Shown here: positions 17,501-32,100 of the stretch, piece by piece
Numbering within the stretch: the stretch's first letter is position 1
Layout: every line of letters begins with the position of its first letter
Assembly: GCA_964199315.1 (NCBI GenBank)
Contig: OZ116703.1
Span: 992,001 to 1,056,000 of the forward strand
Length of the DNA: 64,000 nucleotides
From: Orbicella franksi
Taxonomy: Eukaryota
Reading direction: 5' to 3'
Program-made: the position numbers and the translations under genes
The notes under the pieces: generated by a model
Told to the model about the DNA's origin: nothing
Seen by the model: the letters and a program-made list of their open reading frames with translations, nothing else
Database searches by the model: none

Positions 17501-19676
17501 TGAATTTCCACCCTTTTCATGTTATAACATTTTGGAAATTACACATCCTAATAATATTCAGAGGCTGTATCATTTATCGTCATCATTATTATGAGCCTCT
17601 ATATTGCTGTTTCAACACCCTATTGCAAGTCGGAATTTTGCTCCAACAATTGACCTCACATATAGGTAATTGGGCACATCACATATGGGTAATCACATCG
17701 GGCTGCTGCTTTAATCTCCAATTTCAGTGTTTTGTTGTAAATCAACTTTGGACTCAAACTACATGTATAACTTCAATAGCCTGCAAACACAGATGTCACA
17801 TGTATTTCCAGCAACTCACTTGTTTCAGCCAGCATGTGAAACAAAACCTCCAATAAACCAGATGCTCTCGCCCCCAGGGACGACTCCCATAAAAAAGGAC
17901 AGGGGTGCTTGTCGGAAATTTTGAAAAGAACCCCTAAGAGGTACCAAGATGCTATTTTGTGGGCGTGGCTTGAAATGTTTTTCACCCCTGAGGTACCAAA
18001 ATCCTGCTTCAAGGGTGTGGCTTGAAACTTTTTTATCCCTTAAAGGTACCAATAATTTATTCTAAAACAACACATTATCTCCTGTCACATTTTTTTGGGC
18101 TCAACACCCTAAAGAGTACTGCAAAAGCCCCCAATGTGGGACTTTTGAGGCTCAACATCCTAAGAGGTAACAAAAAAAAAAAAAAAAAAAACACTTTTCA
18201 ACTCCTACAAGGTATGAGGAGCACCCCCATCCTTTTTATATCGGAGCCCCCCCCCCCCTCCCCCGGGGCTCTCGCAGGCTAAAACTGCAAGAACTCACCT
18301 TTAATGTTCTGAGTAAAACATGTTCATCAATTGCCAAACCCAACATGTCTTCATGCTCATACAACTGAAAAGCCACACGAACTTCTCTCAGTTCCTGAAA
18401 ACTGAATGAAAAGCTTCAAACATGAAAACACAGTTAACATATTTCAATGTAATTTTCATAAGGAAATTGTACCTCAAGTATCTGTTGGAGAGCATTTCCA
18501 AAGATTTCTCGATGACTCGTGAGTTGTACAGCGCATCGTGCATGTTGTATGTTCGATGGATGTCGCCATGTAGACACTTGATATCCAACATGTTTAAAAG
18601 GGACTATGTACAAACAAACCAGAAATGAGTAAACTAGAAACAAACATTGTGGAACACATACAAGCCAGAGAGTTTGCCACATCCTCCACAGTACGTGTTT
18701 TTTGATTGAACCAGCCACTCGCACCTTTATCCCCGTTTAGCTTCGAAGATGACTTTTTAAAAATGCTTTTATTGGCTCCCGGGGGCTCTCGACCCGCAGA
18801 GATTTTGGAATGTGTATTAATTAATATTTTCTGTAACTATACAGGTTCTGAGAGCTGTTTATGTACACCCACCTTGTTTAGTACACATCTCTGATTTTAT
18901 GTCGTATGTTATTTTTTCAGACTTACAAGTCCTTAAAAATCCTCACAGGACACTAAACATTACTGGAAAATGTTTAAATGTCTCCCTTTACGTTCATGAA
19001 CATACCTTAATACTCAGCCCGTTTGCTTTCTCCTTCTCAAATTCCTGGGGAACATTTTTTCGAAAAAGATCCTTGCGAAACTAAATAGAAGAAGAGACCA
19101 GAAATCAGGCCACTCGCAATGAGTTTATTTTCGTTCGCAAACTGGGGCACAATACATCGTTAACCGAAGAAAACATTTGAGATCTTATCATGTTCGAATG
19201 AGACATGTCTAAGCATTGATCTACACCAAAATTTATCCAAAATAATTCAGAAGGTGGAAATTGTTAACATTACGACGGCCTTATGAACAAAGACAACGAC
19301 AAAGACAACACAAGAACACCCTCTGTCATTTGTCTCACTGCATGTTAACTGGAGTAATTATAGGTTGTAAAATGTGTTCATAAGTGAAGCACTTACCCCC
19401 AAAGCTTTGGCAAGGCAGCTTTCCGTTTTTCGAGACAAAAATACAAAAATTGAAGTTAGTCTTAAGTAAGCTTAATTAACGAGATCGAAGGCAGCTAAAT
19501 TTACCTCATTATAGAAGCTCATAGAGAGAACACACATTCGAGAACTGACAGAATTACGCAATTCGATCGGCAAAACAGCAGCAAACAAGCAGAGAAGCAC
19601 CGAAGCAAAACACCCAAACTTACCGTAGTTCTTCCCAAGTGTAAACGTCTCTTTTTCTCGGATACTTTAAGTGCAT
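11557..19676 (-). CDS. Uncharacterised 632-aa protein with a degenerate EF-hand-like pair, 19 exons
   Basis: Exons (minus) 19676-19624, 19418-19397, 19080-19006, 18830-18725, 18603-18473, 18394-18299, 17367-17326, 17113-17046, 16401-16326, 16208-16137, 15415-15314, 15032-14970, 14719-14609, 14470-14437, 13449-13280, 13139-13083, 12970-12862, 12793-12723, 11997-11557. All junctions GT-AG and phase-compatible, 1899 nt total. Starts MHLKYPRKRDVYTWEELR; contains ELREVRVAFQLYEHED...RTLKICGR...DRLMLYEFLDLL. Confidence 0.78.
12318..12557 (+). mobile_element. TTAA-flanked MITE (Kolobok-like), copy A
   Basis: TTAA|AGGAGCT...GGGCTCCA|TTAA; body shared with copies at 13583, 58131 and 61511. Confidence 0.7.
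13583..13824 (+). mobile_element. TTAA-flanked MITE (Kolobok-like), copy B
   Basis: TTAA|AGGAGCTACGTCACG...CCGTGACTGTCAGCTCC|TTAA. Confidence 0.75.
13846..14215 (-). mobile_element. 5'-truncated LINE (L2/CR1-like) 3' end with (TTCG)n tail
   Basis: Minus strand gives YTTSCGKHTIRYQGPYIWSKLSKD / LVTFKMRIRKIDLSDLIDNNSSCCKLCKL* (one frameshift), typical of non-LTR ORF2 C-termini. It is followed by a 3' UTR, AATAAA (TTTATT 13906-13911) and a (TTCG)n microsatellite. Confidence 0.75.
15578..15775 (+). mobile_element. Short retroposed insertion with poly(A) tail and 13-bp target-site duplication
   Basis: TSD CATTACTCAAGAA at 15578-15590 and 15763-15775 around an AT-rich 3'UTR-like insert with (TGTAA)n, AATAAA and a poly(A) run. 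Confidence 0.8.
16445..16785 (-). mobile_element. Decayed tRNA-derived SINE
   Basis: Reverse strand has a degenerate tRNA-like head (cctagtggttaatacactgcacc) and a body homologous to the 40283-40422 copy. Confidence 0.5.
17871..18268. mobile_element. MITE with CCCCnGGG/poly-C termini
   Basis: ccccagggacgactcccataaaaaagga versus tcctttttatatcggagccccc...ccccgggg; internal direct repeats gaggtaccaa...gtggcttgaaa. Confidence 0.6.
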
Positions 19677-19689
19677 TTTAACGAGAAAA

Positions 19690-19800
19690 TTAACTTAACC
19701 GGGCTGCGAAAAGAACAACATATCACGGCTTAGAGTCAAAATGGCGCCCATAAACTCCATGACAACAATGTCTCTGGGGACCAATGAACCTGTCAAGTCT
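19690..19800. promoter_or_regulatory. Promoter of the minus-strand EF-hand-like gene, possibly bidirectional
   Basis: AAAATGGCG (YY1/initiator-like) at 19738-19746 pointing right; RFX X-box-like actccatgacaac (19754-19766) and gtctctggggac (19770-19781); CCAAT 19781-19785. Confidence 0.4.
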
Positions 19801-20190
19801 GTCAATCATGTCTCACAATTGAAAATCTTGGATCGGAGCGGACCTGACTGAAAGGAGAGTGGATTTTTCAAAATTCAAGTTTATTGTTGTCAGAAAATTT
19901 GATTTTTATTAGGCTGTATTTGCTTCCCTCAGGACAGGCTGAATTTCAATTGCTTCTTTTTTCTCTAGGTTGACCGTAATTTACCAGTAACTATTGAAGA
20001 GTATCGTATACTTCACTGCTGACGTTTTCAGGGTTGTTTCACACTTCTTTCACTCGTATTGCTCTACGAGTAGAGCCTCCTTTACTCAACTCTTTGGATG
20101 GCGCAGATTAAAAAGTGAAAAAAAAAAGGGAAAAGAAGGTTCTGGTCGCAGGGCACCGGCGAGGAAATGTTGGAAATCCAGTAGATAGTC

Positions 20191-20411
20191 TGAATAAAAG
20201 AGAAACCAGAAACTGCAAGGGAACGGATACGATAAACGCTGCCAACGTAGGCTGGCGTTACATATCTTCGCTACACAGTGCTGACGAGCCCCAAGAAGGG
20301 CGAAACAGCTGTCCACTGTTGCGATCCTACTTTATCGGTTCTTGACATATTGGTGTCTCGAAACGTTTTTCACGTAGTATCAGCCTTGCAGTCTACTCTT
20401 TGAATAAAAGA
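20191..20411 (+). mobile_element. Retrozyme-like 210-nt unit containing the hammerhead
   Basis: 11-bp direct repeat TGAATAAAAGA at 20191-20201 and 20401-20411; nested long-range complementarity encloses the ribozyme. Confidence 0.55.
20275..20319 (+). ncRNA. Type I hammerhead ribozyme
   Basis: Stem I ACAGTG(20275-80)/CACTGT(20314-19); core CTGACGA(20281-87); stem II GCCC-caagaa-GGGC(20288-301); GAAA(20302-05); minimal stem III A-C[AGCT]G-T; cleavage triplet GTC with C17 at 20313. Confidence 0.88.
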
Positions 20412-21297
20412 AGTTGTTGCTTATCGTATCACCGTGGGGTTAGGTTTAGGGAGGGCCTGGAGGAAGGTGAGGGGAGGTGGCTGTTGGGACAGGTGTGTAG
20501 CTGGACAGAGCACGCAGCATAAAATACTAAATCCCAACTCGTTTTAAATTACATTATCCGAGCTAATTGCTAAAGGTCTGCATAAAGAAATTCACTTTCA
20601 CGCCCATTTTTTCTTCCTTGAAATAGGGCCAACTGACATAAAGAAGTTGGAAACAGAGAGTAACGGGCAATGAAACAGTTTCAAACTCCACAGTGCAATA
20701 AATAATAATGGACTCCATTCTCTCTTTTACTATAATTTAATTTATAACATTTACATATTTAATTTACATGTTGCGTTGTTACGCTCTCTGCGAAATAATA
20801 TGCATAAACTGAAACAGCAATGTAATAGAAATTAATAAATTATGATCAGTCGAGAGATTCCAGTCAAAGTTTTCTTCAGCCAAGCGGTCAAACATCAATT
20901 CTGTCTGATTTCTTAGCCTGAAAATTCAATAAAATGTATATTGGTTGAATATTGATTTCACCAAAAGGTTCAGTATTATGTTGCTTTAGGTACCCCTCGG
21001 TACCAACATGGCGTCCCCATTGAAAGCTTTAAAAATTGGGGTGAACTTGACGCGCGGATAACGCGCGTATGAAAAACTGTACAAAGCTAAATCTTGGTGA
21101 CGCTGTTTACTCTCATAATCTTTAATTAATATCCCAGATTCTTGGTGAATCCAGGAGTAAGGAAAGAGGTGGAAAGTGTATACGTGTGGCAGGAAATTAA
21201 AAAGAGTGGGAGGAAACGCTATTGCCAAAACGTGACGGAGAACGAGATTTACAACATGGCGTCAATATCTTTCAATGGAAAAGACACAAGAAAGAAT

Positions 21298-21409
21298 TAC
21301 AGTCAAACCTCTCCAAAACTGCAATGGCCACCTTGGGGACAGAGAAAAGTAGGGGTTGTAGAGAGGTGGCGGTTTTAGGAAGGTGGCCGTTAGTGGAGGT
21401 TCGACTATA
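21298..21409. mobile_element. TA-flanked Tc1/mariner (pogo-like) MITE
   Basis: tacagtcaaacctc ... gaggttcgactata; internal motif acggccac/gtggccgt shared with 37047, 56483 and 59830. Confidence 0.65.
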
Positions 21410-21686
21410 TCATATTTTCTACTTACAAAAGTTGCACGAAAATCTGCATGACTTCTCCATCCTGGCGACTTGTTTTTCACACGCATCAAGCATGACAATA
21501 TCATAAAAGCATGAATACTTATCGGCTTCGTCTACGCAAGGTCTGACATTCTCTGAAGAAACTGCAAAAATAGTGAAAAACATTGCTGGATAAATTATTT
21601 ATTAAATTTAGGAAAAACACTCAGGACTAGCTAGTTTCTGGGGACATGCGTAAAAAGGTAACGGACTGAAGGTCTTGAAGGCTTTA

Positions 21687-22703
21687 CGGTCATTTCGCCC
21701 CAACCAAAAGTCATTTCGCCCCATAATCGAAGTCACTTCGCCCCATACAAAAGTCACTTCGCCCCATACAGAAGTCACTTCGCTCCATGTAAGAAACTAG
21801 TGAAATTTGTCGTGAACTTTTCGTTTTGATGTTGGAGTTGGAATGATTTTGAACTTGAGACTTATGTCAGTTCAGATTATTAACTACTGCAGCTTCCAGT
21901 CACGTTCGTTTAAATACGCTTGGTAACACTAAATATCATTTCGTTGGATTACTTTCTTCATCACGAATTCTTACACGTTGTAATCCCTCAAAATACACTA
22001 AACATCACTTCGTTCGATTACTTTCCTCAACACGAATTCTTATCCGTTGTAATCCCTCAAACCCCGTTAATGCACGGGAACTTGAACTGTTCTTGTTAAT
22101 TCTTATCGTTATCGGCCTCTAGTTTTGCTTACTCAAGAGAAACGACTTTCGGTAAATGTTGTCTCACTTTTACCGCGCGTAATTGGTTGAAAACTTGCCA
22201 TGAAAACGCAGCAATGACGTACGCTTCAAATTTCAGGACTTTATAGCGATGAAGCACTGCTAATCTTTTGCTTTGTTCTTGTTCTTTTACTTTAAACAAT
22301 AATTTTAGAAAAGGGAGCTTTTGGAAAAGATTACGAGTTTGAATAAAGATAAGTTTGCATAAATTATTCGGCTTTTTCTATGATTTTATATTTTTATCAA
22401 AAGAATTGTCACGTTTTTATTTTTTTTTTCCTGTATTCTATGTATTGCATTGTTGATCATTGCTTTTATTTTATTTGGTGGAGCCGTTTGTTTTTTTGTT
22501 TGTTTGGTTTATCCGCCTAGTCCCTCAGTGCATTCAGGTCAGTAAGAGCAGGCTTTCAACAACCGCTTGGCTGACCGTTCGTTGCCCTCGTATTCGTCCC
22601 ACAAGTTGAACAGTTTGGTCTGGAGGTCGCGGTACTTGTGTCGTTGGATTCTTTTGAGTTTCCTGTCAGACACAAGGCGGATCTGCAGGACTTCTTGAAG
22701 TGA
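21687..22703 (-). mobile_element. Mutator-like (MULE) DNA transposon remnant
   Basis: Minus 22700-22539 reads LQEVLQIRLVSDRKLKRIQRHKYRDLQTKLFNLWDEYEGNERSAKRLLKACSY, resembling animal MULE transposase C-termini. The terminus at 21687 carries ~5 units of (aa)gtca(t/c)ttcgcccc with 23-24 nt period; internal ~68-bp duplication at ~21926-22060. Confidence 0.62.
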
Positions 22704-29124: not shown

Positions 29125-32100
29125 ATGAGCGAATGTGGTCGTCAAATCGACGAATCTTCGCGTCTGGTGAACCCAGTTCTGAACGCTTCGCCGGAAGATA
29201 TTGGTCGAATGGCGGTCGGCAGCATTAAAGTTTACAAAAGAAGGTGGTATATTTTAATGCTTTTTACGCTTCTCAACGCAACAGGGAATATTCTGTGGAA
29301 TACATGGCCTCCAGTTCAAGAGACATGCCAACTGGTGTTTGGTTGGGATAAAACGAACGTGTTGATTATCGGCGCTTTACAAGCGCTTGGTTCAATAATC
29401 AGCATAGTGCCGTCCGCATGGCTTTTGGACACAAAAGGTGAGCAGTAAGCAAGTTTATTCTCATTTTTTCCTTTGTTAAGCCTTGTGTAAAACGACATAA
29501 CTTTGGAAGAATCGTCTAAAGCGATCGACCGGCATATTTGTTGATATTGTTGAACAGGATAATTTGAACGAGTTCGCTCATGTTATTCTATCCGCATGAA
29601 CAGCTTCTCAACGCGAAAACGGCCTCAGATTTTTAAACGGCGGTGTCTTGTTGTGAGATCGAGTGATTATAAGCTAGCGTGTTCTTTCCTTCACCGTCAT
29701 GATCAAACAGGACAATAATTATAATGAATTCTCTAATTTTCAAGTACGAAATCGAGGGTCCGGCGAAGTCACGAAGGACAATGTTGTACGTTTGAGTTTG
29801 AAAGCTAAAAGAAAATTTGGGTATCAGATCCTAGACTAAGTGTAGCTCCTCCAAGTAACTCTAAGTCCATCGAGCGTGATTCTTAGGAAAGTGGGTGAGA
29901 GAGAAAGAGCTATGTTTTGTCGCCTCTCGGCCATTTTGGCCCAGCCATTTTGGACATTAGCATGCGCTATCTCTGGTCACGCTCACGGGGCTACGCAGCA
30001 AGCGTTCCCGTATGAAGAGCTTTTTTGCATTCTGGCCGCGCGCGTAAAGTGGAGCGAGAACAAAAACTCGTCTCTCGCGCGCTTCAATTTACGCGCGGCC
30101 AAAGTACGGAAAAGCTCTTCCTACCGGAACACTTGCTAAGCAGGCTAGCTAAGGCCTAGTCAGGACACTAGCGACACTAACGACATAAGGAGGACGGTAA
30201 GTTTGCTTTGTGAACGTCTTGACATAATGACACAATAGCAACATAACAGCATGAACATAGCGACATAGGGAAAAAACCTGATCTTTTCCTTATGCTTTTT
30301 ATGTCGATGTTCACGTTGCGACATATATAAGCTACTATGTCGTCATGTAACTATGTCGTTATATCGCTCGTGTGAACAAGGCTTGCGGCTAAAACAGCAT
30401 GAACTTAACGTCATAGGGGGAAAACAGATCTTTTCCTTATGTCGTTATGTCGATGTTTACATTATAAACATAGGCCTCTACTCAAATATCGAAGAGAAAT
30501 ATTTAGAGAATTTTAGAGATATTTAGAAAATTTAGGGATATTTAGTAAAATATTTAGAGACACTAAATTTTAGTAATATTCATGGTTTTTCTGGCTGAAC
30601 CCTATGTTTTCTTCGCTACCATTACTCCGTTCTTTGCCAGAAATAATCTTTTTCAGTGGTTCCCTACTTGAAAAATATATTCCATATCACTACAAAAGCA
30701 CTAAAGCAATAATTTTCTATACCAGCATCCAGCGGATGCTGGTATGAACATCGAAGCGCCAGAATCTTCCTCAAACCCCTCTACTACTGCGAGAAAATTT
30801 TGAAAATTTTGGCCTAGGAAAATAAGAGAAATTTAGAAATTCTTTTAATGATATTTTTTATGATTTTGAGCATTTGCGGAAAGATATTGAGGTGATTTTA
30901 CTTGATATTTCTGGAAAGGCTTAAACCGACATATGGCGATTATGTCGTTATGTCATTTTGTCGTTTTGTCGTTAGTGTGAACTAGGCTTAAGAGAGAAGA
31001 GGGTTGCTCGGAGTCTATTTATATCCAGAGGGGATGATGGTCCGTTATTTTTGGGCCAGTGTTCACCGAACTTTTCCCAGATTTGCTTGTGATGGCAAAC
31101 TACAACATGGTCTGTGACAAACATGAATCTCAAATATACAGGGCAGTTGAAGATATTTATATGAAGACTGATATGCTCCTCAGGATTACCACTGACAAGG
31201 TACGGGGCCTCCGGTGAAAGGAAACGGGGCCTGGTGAACGTAGGTTAGCTCATCAGAAACTGACGCATAATGTTTATACCTCTAGGTATACCCCACAGTA
31301 GATTCATTTCCACAGCCTAGTACAGTAGGCCTACAGTTTCATTCTTTCGTAAACCTCACAGATCGTAATTTCGTCTCCAAGACTAATTTAACTATATAGT
31401 CAAACTCAAACACTTTCCTTGACATTTTTTTTAGGTCTTCGGTTTGCAGTCATATGCTCCATGTCACTTCAAACCATCGCTGTCGTCTGCGAACTCATCC
31501 CGTCCCCTCCCCATGTGAGGACCGCGCTCATCACGTTTGCCGAGTTCTTGATTTCAGTGGCGGTACCCGCTGTACAAAATGCGGGCGTGCTTGTGCTGTC
31601 CGCGACCTGGTTCCCGCCACACGAGCGCATGACCGCCACTGCCATCGCCACACTGGTTTCGTACCTTGGGTCGGCGTTTAGCTATGTCGTGGGTCCAAAC
31701 TTCGTACCCGATGTAGATTATGGCAACTTAACTCATTATCAAACAGGAAAAGGCATCGATATCAACAAATTGAGGAATAACACCACTCCGGAACAAATGA
31801 AATTTCTTTTGACTAGAATAAACGACTACTTGTTCATCGAGGCTGTTTTAGTTGGAGTATTATTCTTCGCGGTGCTGATTTATTTTCCCGCCAAACCGCC
31901 CAGCCCACCAAGCTTGTCGTCCGCTGCCGGGCGCCTAGATTTTGCTTCTGGCGCCAAAACTCTGCTCACAAACCGGTCATTCTGGTTACTGTTGTTAATC
32001 TTCAGTCTCAGTAACGGAGTGAACTGGGGATGGTCTAGTGTCCAGGACCTTATCTTCTCTGGAGTTGGGATTGATCAGAAGACCGCTGGCTGGTTAGGAT

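Follow-up and report, generated by a model that had tools for sequence, protein, structure and literature searches.

A type I hammerhead ribozyme carried by a truncated and rearranged copy of a retrozyme-like repeat with Penelope-type insertion scars in Orbicella franksi

The window, by which we mean the whole 64-kb stretch of DNA analysed here, was scanned with cmscan against all 4227 Rfam families, and a single match rose above its gathering score, namely RF00163 (Hammerhead_1) at 20275-20319 on the plus strand, which covers model positions 1-45 with E = 2.9e-6 and exceeds the family cut-off of 34 bits (Table 1). A permissive scan (E up to 10) of positions 10000-32000 returned no second hammerhead, in agreement with the first-pass annotation, which had found none in the window by eye. 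The motif lies inside a 199-bp insertion (20202-20400) flanked by an exact 11-bp target-site duplication (TSD), and BLAST against the genome showed that repeated sequence is confined to 20193-20402, with unique flanks on both sides. A spliced gene lies on the minus strand, opposite to the ribozyme, and the insertion stands about 450 bp upstream of its first seen exon (19624-19750), which bears an ATG. One of its exons is a micro-exon of 22 nt (19397-19418), further exons lie below 18473, and the joined exons translate open, beginning MHLKYPRKRDVYTWEELRCLAKALGF. Nothing points to a functional link between the insertion and this gene.

Table 1. Positions of the hammerhead, of the insertion that carries it and of the neighbouring gene in the window, with the loci of the sister subfamily
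Feature	Position	Strand	Basis
Type I hammerhead core (RF00163)	20275-20319	+	Full-length match, 38.8 bits
Helix I, 6 bp	20275-20280 with 20314-20319	+	Sequence
CUGACGA core	20281-20287	+	Sequence
Helix II, 4 bp (GCCC/GGGC, loop CAAGAA)	20288-20301	+	Sequence
GAAA core	20302-20305	+	Sequence
Eight-letter palindrome ACAGCUGU	20305-20312	+	Sequence
C17	20313	+	Predicted cleavage C20313/C20314
Hammerhead with extended stem I	20268-20324	+	MFE fold, covariation
Distal helix I (UCGC with GCGA)	20268-20271 with 20321-20324	+	Present in MFE fold
Stem I internal loop (UAC opposite U)	20272-20274 opposite U20320	+	
Left TSD copy, 11 bp, TGAATAAAAGA	20191-20201	.	Exact direct repeat just outside the repeat homology
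Right TSD copy, 11 bp, TGAATAAAAGA	20401-20411	.	Exact direct repeat
Inverted arm, unit positions 477-526	20202-20251	-	blastn of 526-bp unit, L001 1703-1752
Direct arm, 5'-truncated, ~150 nt, unit positions ~280-438, bears the hammerhead, ends at T1	20250-20400	+	
Exons of the minus-strand spliced gene	18473-18603, 19006-19080, 19397-19418, 19624-19750	-	Spliced reads and contigs, GT..AG introns
Sister subfamily loci	L031-L044, L052-L058, e.g. C3:4672891, C5:6467442		

Several other features were recorded in the window. A near-perfect hairpin of about 115 nt at 30010-30124 gave weak scores with miRNA models on both strands (mir-942, 30.8 bits, far below the cut-off) and is probably not a miRNA but an inverted-repeat element. 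Five AAGTCACTTCGCCCCATACAA-like copies of a 21-nt tandem repeat occupy 21687-21792, and a direct repeat of 67-69 nt is present twice at 21926-22061 with 90% identity. At 22220-22317, RNA reads and a contig carry a different 34-nt sequence in place of 96 nt; here the sequenced individuals differ from the assembly by an indel or an allele.

The motif holds both conserved core boxes (CUGANGA and GAAA) and an NUH triplet, here GUC with C20313 as its last base, and three helices surround the core with helix I open, which is the type I topology. Helix III amounts to two base pairs and a loop in a single molecule and to 8 bp if two molecules pair. Every element that the first-pass annotation had listed was found at the position it gave, and the full-length match obtained from the Rfam search that it had proposed bore out its reading of the motif as a type I hammerhead that is complete and has a palindromic loop on a stem III of 2 bp. 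The exact 45-mer of the window occurs 86 times in the genome and a reversed-pattern control not once, so it is not a chance motif, while a pattern consisting of the intact core and the CAGCUG palindrome finds 167 genome copies, with zero in the controls. Apart from the shortness of the motif, nothing speaks for a chance match to the hammerhead consensus, and this reading can for practical purposes be set aside, given the E value in the window, the 86 identical copies against none in the control, and the compensatory changes between subfamilies that are described below. The window motif is confirmed as a genuine, sequence-intact type I hammerhead.

The insertion is built from two arms of a longer repeat, whose unit is numbered here so that it ends at the outermost terminus; the hammerhead then takes unit positions u305-349 with cleavage after u343, and the two termini are T1 at about u438 and T2 at u526. 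The inverted arm is a tail fragment, the last ~50 nt of the unit, with T2 (...GGTTTC) at its outward end, and in other copies the same segment is likewise inverted relative to the ribozyme arm. The direct arm is 96-99% identical to many copies, the homology ending at about 20395-20402. The left terminus of the window copy is T2 and the right one T1. No ORF reaches 80 aa over or near the copy, and Tandem Repeats Finder (periods up to 500) detected no local tandem repeat there. Its 45-mer is identical to the family consensus, and its four private substitutions (20223, 20226, 20345 and 20349) all fall outside the ribozyme. What the first-pass annotation had treated as a stand-alone feature is instead part of a fragment of 199 bp, TSD-flanked, 5'-truncated and rearranged, that derives from a 526-bp repeat. 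We considered and rejected a short "A+B" subfamily that would propagate as such, because the inner junction was found just twice genome-wide (in the window and at C11:27034887, with a 6-nt offset), each time with its own, different TSD, and two occurrences are too few to call a subfamily.

When the 600 bases around the motif were compared with the 497-Mb assembly, at least 76 BLAST matches and 370 candidates were obtained at 93-99% identity, mostly 96-99%, and the hammerhead family comprises a few hundred copies. The unit of 526 bp has no reading frame. It was established on contig C1, where four hammerheads, each scoring 38.8 bits, lie exactly 526 bp apart in a head-to-tail array of 2.1 kb (3.97 units, 98.6-99% mutual identity in self-BLAST), preceded by an inverted piece of 63 bp and enclosed by a 13-bp TSD; the array was detected by the spacing of BLAST matches, as Tandem Repeats Finder is blind to periods >500. 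The same family is present in sequencing runs labelled coral or coral metagenome, which bears out the suggestion of the first-pass annotation that the motif belongs to the cnidarian Penelope-like and retrozyme elements. Other regular spacings were seen on a much larger scale: four exact 45-mers recur at about 36.6 kb on contig C6 (C6:18648076-18758006), and six are spaced by tens of kb on contig C8 (C8:25135045-25389388), and this regularity suggests that large segments were duplicated in tandem and took an insertion with them.

In about 90 fetched loci, no ORF of at least 180 aa was found to be borne by the element. Ten ORFs of these loci were compared with Pfam and proved unrelated (NB-ARC and others), except for one RVT_1 fragment at locus L079, which is 574 bp away from the element, on the opposite strand and not contiguous with it. 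On contig C15 (~4.73-4.81 Mb), NB-ARC/NACHT-type NTPase ORFs (L056:2479-3045 and L057) adjoin three hammerhead copies 32-51 kb apart, and the locus looks like a tandemly duplicated immune-type gene cluster bearing the repeat.

The unit was mapped on all fetched loci and duplicates were dropped by their flanks, which left 61 independent insertions of at least 150 bp. Element 3' ends form 91 of the 122 outer ends, and 75 of these 91 fall at two sites only, 45 at u430-449 (T1) and 30 at u520-526 (T2), separated by 84-88 nt, while the remaining 31 outer ends, which are 5' ends, are scattered along the unit, and so are the inner junctions. Simple 5'-truncated copies account for 25 of the 61 (20 end at T1 and 5 at T2). 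In 23 further insertions two copies stand head-to-head as inverted pairs with a 3' end on either outer side, and each of these (23/23) combines T1 with T2; neither a T1+T1 nor a T2+T2 insertion occurs among the 61. An exact TSD of 9-15 bp, mostly 11-13 bp, surrounds 29 of them. A 21-nt motif stands before T1 and again before T2, its two copies being 86% identical to each other.

Seen alone, the window copy could be mistaken for a fold-back DNA transposon (MITE), moved by cut-and-paste with the hammerhead as incidental cargo. It has imperfect terminal inverted repeats of about 13-15 bp (…CTGCAAGG / CCTTGCAG…) that are paired in the minimum free energy (MFE) fold, its TSD measures 11 bp, and many other copies are long palindromes. 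These inverted termini, however, arise from the 21-nt motif that precedes both T1 and T2 together with one inverted arm: the inversion turns the two motif copies into short terminal inverted repeats, which give the 199-nt RNA its fold-back look. The TSDs moreover differ in length (9-15 bp), the inner junctions vary in the way that 5' truncation predicts, head-to-tail arrays exist, and T1 is paired with T2 in 23/23, so we consider a cut-and-paste origin very improbable.

The features of the family are those described for Penelope-like elements (PLEs), in whose insertions 5' truncation is high, with partial tandems, a neighbouring inverted copy that is itself 5'-truncated, and a tail confined to one end (PMC8557442). 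In the Anolis PLE, the protein cleaves and extends both target strands and reverse transcription (RT) starts at two adjacent internal sites, the stretch between them being the tail (PMC11167929). The family combines 5' truncation with defined 3' ends and TSDs, and an inverted 5'-truncated neighbour copy with a one-sided tail occurs in it, as in the window copy itself; its insertions are shown in this way to bear the PLE signature. What the 526-bp unit does not contain is a reverse transcriptase and a GIY-YIG endonuclease of its own. As the unit encodes nothing, the enzymes must act in trans, and from the insertion signature we infer trans-mobilisation by a PLE.

In animals the GIY-YIG domain is diagnostic for PLEs that are endonuclease-positive. 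At least 1018 candidate domains of this type occur in the genome, their open frames reaching 796-1034 aa, and none of the GIY-YIG matches listed (150 of ~1018) is closer than 10 kb to a listed position of a hammerhead or a tail motif. An autonomous PLE that shares the hammerhead or the 3' end of the family was not found among the ~90 fetched loci and the GIY-YIG matches listed. Since the unit has no ORF and no GIY-YIG ORF is linked to it, the family is filed as a non-autonomous passenger and not as a PLE proper.

To propose a course of events, a PLE reverse transcriptase/GIY-YIG endonuclease acting in trans would nick both target strands and would prime cDNA from two internal start sites on the element RNA. 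At the window locus both cDNAs would have stopped early, at 50 nt and at ~150 nt, and would then have been joined. On the strength of the invariable T1+T2 pairing (23/23), the long tail of 84-88 nt and the 21-nt motif before each tail boundary, the family may be direct structural evidence that an ORF-less, retrozyme-like hammerhead repeat of a cnidarian is integrated by PLE machinery, a reading towards which we lean, if only slightly.

The principal alternative is a classic retrozyme cycle, in which tandem transcripts are cut to 526-nt monomers, the monomers are circularised by a host RNA ligase and the circle serves as template for reverse transcription; on this view the window copy goes back to the solo integration of one such circle, and the difference from the explanation preferred here concerns only the nature of the template. 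The family has much in common with retrozymes, as tandem units with one type I hammerhead each exist in the array on contig C1, coding capacity, LTR, PBS and PPT are all absent, some insertions exceed one unit, and family sequence is found in RNA libraries. In addition, the RNA of one unit, taken from ribozyme site to ribozyme site, is predicted to be strongly self-paired (-197.5 kcal/mol, against -144.7 ± 6.5 for shuffles, z = -8.1), like the circular RNAs of coral retrozymes (PMC7229834). On the other hand, the DNA copies start and end at T1 and T2 and not at the ribozyme site, no read ends occur at the cleavage site in the poly(A) reads, and just one tandem array is present among 61 insertions, the window copy being a solo 199-bp fragment. 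The unit of 526 bp also exceeds the monomer length of animal retrozymes (~150-450 bp), the coral retrozyme studied experimentally having 225/245 nt (PMC7229834). Unit position 344, where 5' ends of cleaved RNA would be expected, shows no excess of 5' truncation points, and just 2 of ~110 segment starts lie near 347; cleaved RNA as the template for reverse transcription was rejected on this ground. Taken together, a retrozyme cycle is possible and has to be taken seriously, but we consider it rather unlikely.

Whether the ribozyme of the window acts was approached through predicted folding and RNA data. For the 69-nt region the MFE structure (-21.5 kcal/mol) is not a hammerhead, since in it the core CUG is paired to the CAG in the palindrome of helix III, and the monomeric hammerhead fold with its 2-bp helix III is predicted at -15.6 kcal/mol. 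The homodimer is predicted at -47.1 kcal/mol, compared with -43.0 kcal/mol for two separate monomers, and its MFE structure is a double hammerhead with an intermolecular helix III of 8 bp. Motifs with a short palindromic helix III act as dimers, single motifs having no or low activity in vitro (PMC4209133). On these models the window hammerhead is predicted to depend on a dimer, with an inactive monomer fold, which agrees with the dimeric cleavage suggested by the first-pass annotation.

For positions 18400-22399 we used two raw-read poly(A) runs (X24 and X46) and the contigs of two more RNA runs. About 22 reads of X46, a shallow poly(A) library, cover the element on both strands; they have loose ends at 20250, 20251 and 20395, and the consensus of these loose ends is the sequence found in other copies. 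No raw read of X24 or X46 covers the unique flanks (19874-20141 and 20410-20677). No excess of read starts or ends was seen at 20313/20314 or elsewhere on the element in these two runs, and the RNA 5' ends that had been anticipated at 20314 did not pile up, although ~22 reads are a weak test and poly(A) libraries a poor one for a cleavage product with 5'-OH or 2',3'-cyclic phosphate, or for circular RNA. A Logan contig of 424 nt from run X25 bridges 19925-20348, from the left flank into the element, and could reflect read-through transcription or DNA carry-over in the library. The RNA reads and contigs show that RNA of the family is present, not which form it takes; the window copy has no transcription of its own in the raw reads, and its cleavage in vivo is unsupported. 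Because it has no partner ribozyme and no evidence of its own transcription, it is most likely idle. Of the earlier proposal that the motif is intact and may be active, the first half stands, while activity is doubtful for a solo copy with a monomer fold that hides the core CUG and with flanks at zero depth.

Constraint on the ribozyme has to be considered separately for copies and for lineages. In 65 independent copies the per-site divergence is 1.47% in the 45-nt ribozyme and 1.83% in 37 surrounding positions, the identical 45-mer is found in 34/65 and the core is kept in 58/65, with core mutations occurring freely in some copies. Single copies decay neutrally, and the ribozyme is not constrained at the level of the copy.

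The genome contains at least three related hammerhead lineages, and between them a different picture is obtained. Across 63 distinct aligned sequences, 95.6% of cells hold the proposed pair, compared with 26-40% when the partners are slid by 1-3 columns, a statistic that should not be over-read because it reflects few events between three subfamilies. One pair of helix II is C-G (33), A-U (19) or U-A (8), one pair of helix I is A-U (43) or C-G (16), and a distal helix I pair (16-79, alignment A1) is C-G (43) or U-A (15) in these 63 sequences. The subfamily changes in stems I and II are nevertheless compensatory in each case, and the co-varying distal helix bears out the earlier observation that stem I continues past a bulge. 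The internal loop (UAC/U) shows 90-100% conservation in subfamilies whose upstream flanks are unalignable, as do C, A, A and the last A of loop II; this bears only indirectly on a possible loop I-loop II tertiary contact. A sister subfamily (loci in Table 1) has stem I ACCGUG/CACGGU and stem II GACC/GGUC and scores 49.8 bits against RF00163. This divergent sister has only the hammerhead and the 3'-terminal/tail blocks in common with the window family, the rest being unalignable; the shared tail block has a small AGATCT...AGATC stem-loop with a loop that differs between subfamilies, and the sister copies end at a T1-like or a T2-like site. Such a pattern suggests selection on propagating masters for two modules, the ribozyme and the region where reverse transcription starts. 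Free mutation of the core in genome homologs had been named beforehand as an observation against a functional ribozyme; it is seen among the dead copies and is not seen among the lineages.

With these numbers, the possibility that the host has exapted the window ribozyme, and keeps it for a role of its cleavage in the processing or termination of an upstream or antisense transcript, can be weighed. Its position near a promoter and the identity of its 45-mer to the family consensus would fit. However, the copy is young, with only the four private substitutions outside the ribozyme, which explains an intact ribozyme without selection, and 34/65 copies are equally intact; furthermore, the flanks are untranscribed in the raw reads and the monomer is predicted to be inactive. 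We regard exaptation as scarcely probable. A ribozyme inside a dead-end retroelement fragment is an ordinary case of a known class and not a new host ribozyme.

The explanation that we hold with high confidence is that an intact hammerhead is the passive cargo of an insertion that was dead on arrival and belongs to a non-autonomous, retrozyme-like family of ~526 bp with PLE-type insertion. The family hammerhead would be kept by selection on propagating masters, probably for the processing of multimeric transcripts, in which it would act as a double (dimeric) hammerhead, and the solitary window copy would most likely be catalytically idle and decaying neutrally. The window feature itself matters little, as one more decaying copy among thousands of coral type I hammerheads, and it should be annotated as a repeat and not as a ribozyme gene. 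In the copies of the family one has, in turn, a clean natural data set: their 3' termini are fixed and paired, the 21-nt motif is duplicated, a conserved stem-loop opens the tail, and the hammerhead, likewise conserved, stands ~90 nt upstream. Such a data set could help to define what the PLE reverse transcriptase recognises on its template, and the family ties retrozyme-like repeats to PLE mobilisation in an invertebrate.

RF00163 was seeded by satellite- or SINE-like hammerheads, namely those of newt satellite 2, Schistosoma Sm-alpha and the cave cricket. The family described here is like them in its type I topology, its short palindromic helix III and its predicted need for a double hammerhead (Forster et al. 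1988, cited in PMC4209133), whereas hosts and repeat units differ. Canonical metazoan type I hammerheads have a helix I of 6 bp, a helix II of 4 bp, a helix III of 1-2 bp and a small palindromic loop (PMC4209133). In the coral Acropora millepora, more than 6000 type I hammerheads of 16 families were reported, of which 1508 canonical ones belong to tandem retrozymes of 220-245 bp with abundant circular RNA, the rest being tied to PLEs or Terminons (PMC7229834). The present family and the 225/245-nt retrozyme of that species are both coral repeats without ORFs that carry a canonical type I hammerhead (PMC7229834), and they share tandem copies, TSDs longer than 4 bp and a highly self-paired unit RNA. 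They differ in unit length (526 bp versus 220-245 bp) and in arrangement, as the family, known here from its genomic copies, consists mostly of solo or inverted-pair insertions, unlike the long tandems of the Acropora retrozyme.

With the pseudo-LTR hammerheads of PLEs (PMC4209133, PMC8557442) the family has in common the position of the hammerhead, ~90 nt upstream of the 3' terminus, as well as 5'-truncated insertions, to which an inverted truncated copy is often adjoined, and a tail confined to one end. In both, the architecture of the ribozyme implies action as a dimer. Unlike a PLE, the family has no RT/GIY-YIG ORF between repeats and is non-autonomous, its hammerhead is canonical, whereas that of most PLE pseudo-LTRs is a helix-III-less min-HHR with a helix II of 7-8 bp (PMC4209133), and its tail measures 84-88 nt compared with 30-40 nt.

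In mechanism the family can be compared with Poseidon PAc of Anolis carolinensis, in which both strands are cleaved and extended from two adjacent RT start sites (PMC11167929). By analogy, a mechanism of the PAc type would yield exactly the T1+T2 head-to-head insertions of the family. Insertion of PAc in vitro does not require cleavage by the ribozyme, and RNA-seq ends at the cut site are absent (PMC11167929), as they are here in ~22 poly(A) reads. PAc is autonomous and biochemically characterised, whereas the features of the family are deduced from genomic copies. A 2026 preprint (10.64898/2026.07.22.740005) makes the case for animal retrozymes being non-autonomous PLE derivatives, on the basis of co-occurrence and pLTR similarity and mainly in vertebrates, and makes no mention of tails or inverted copies. 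The family sits between retrozymes and PLEs, with a canonical hammerhead, an ORF-less and sometimes tandem unit, and PLE-type integration scars; only this scar pattern, at the level of the family, adds to the literature, and the window copy is an ordinary member of it.
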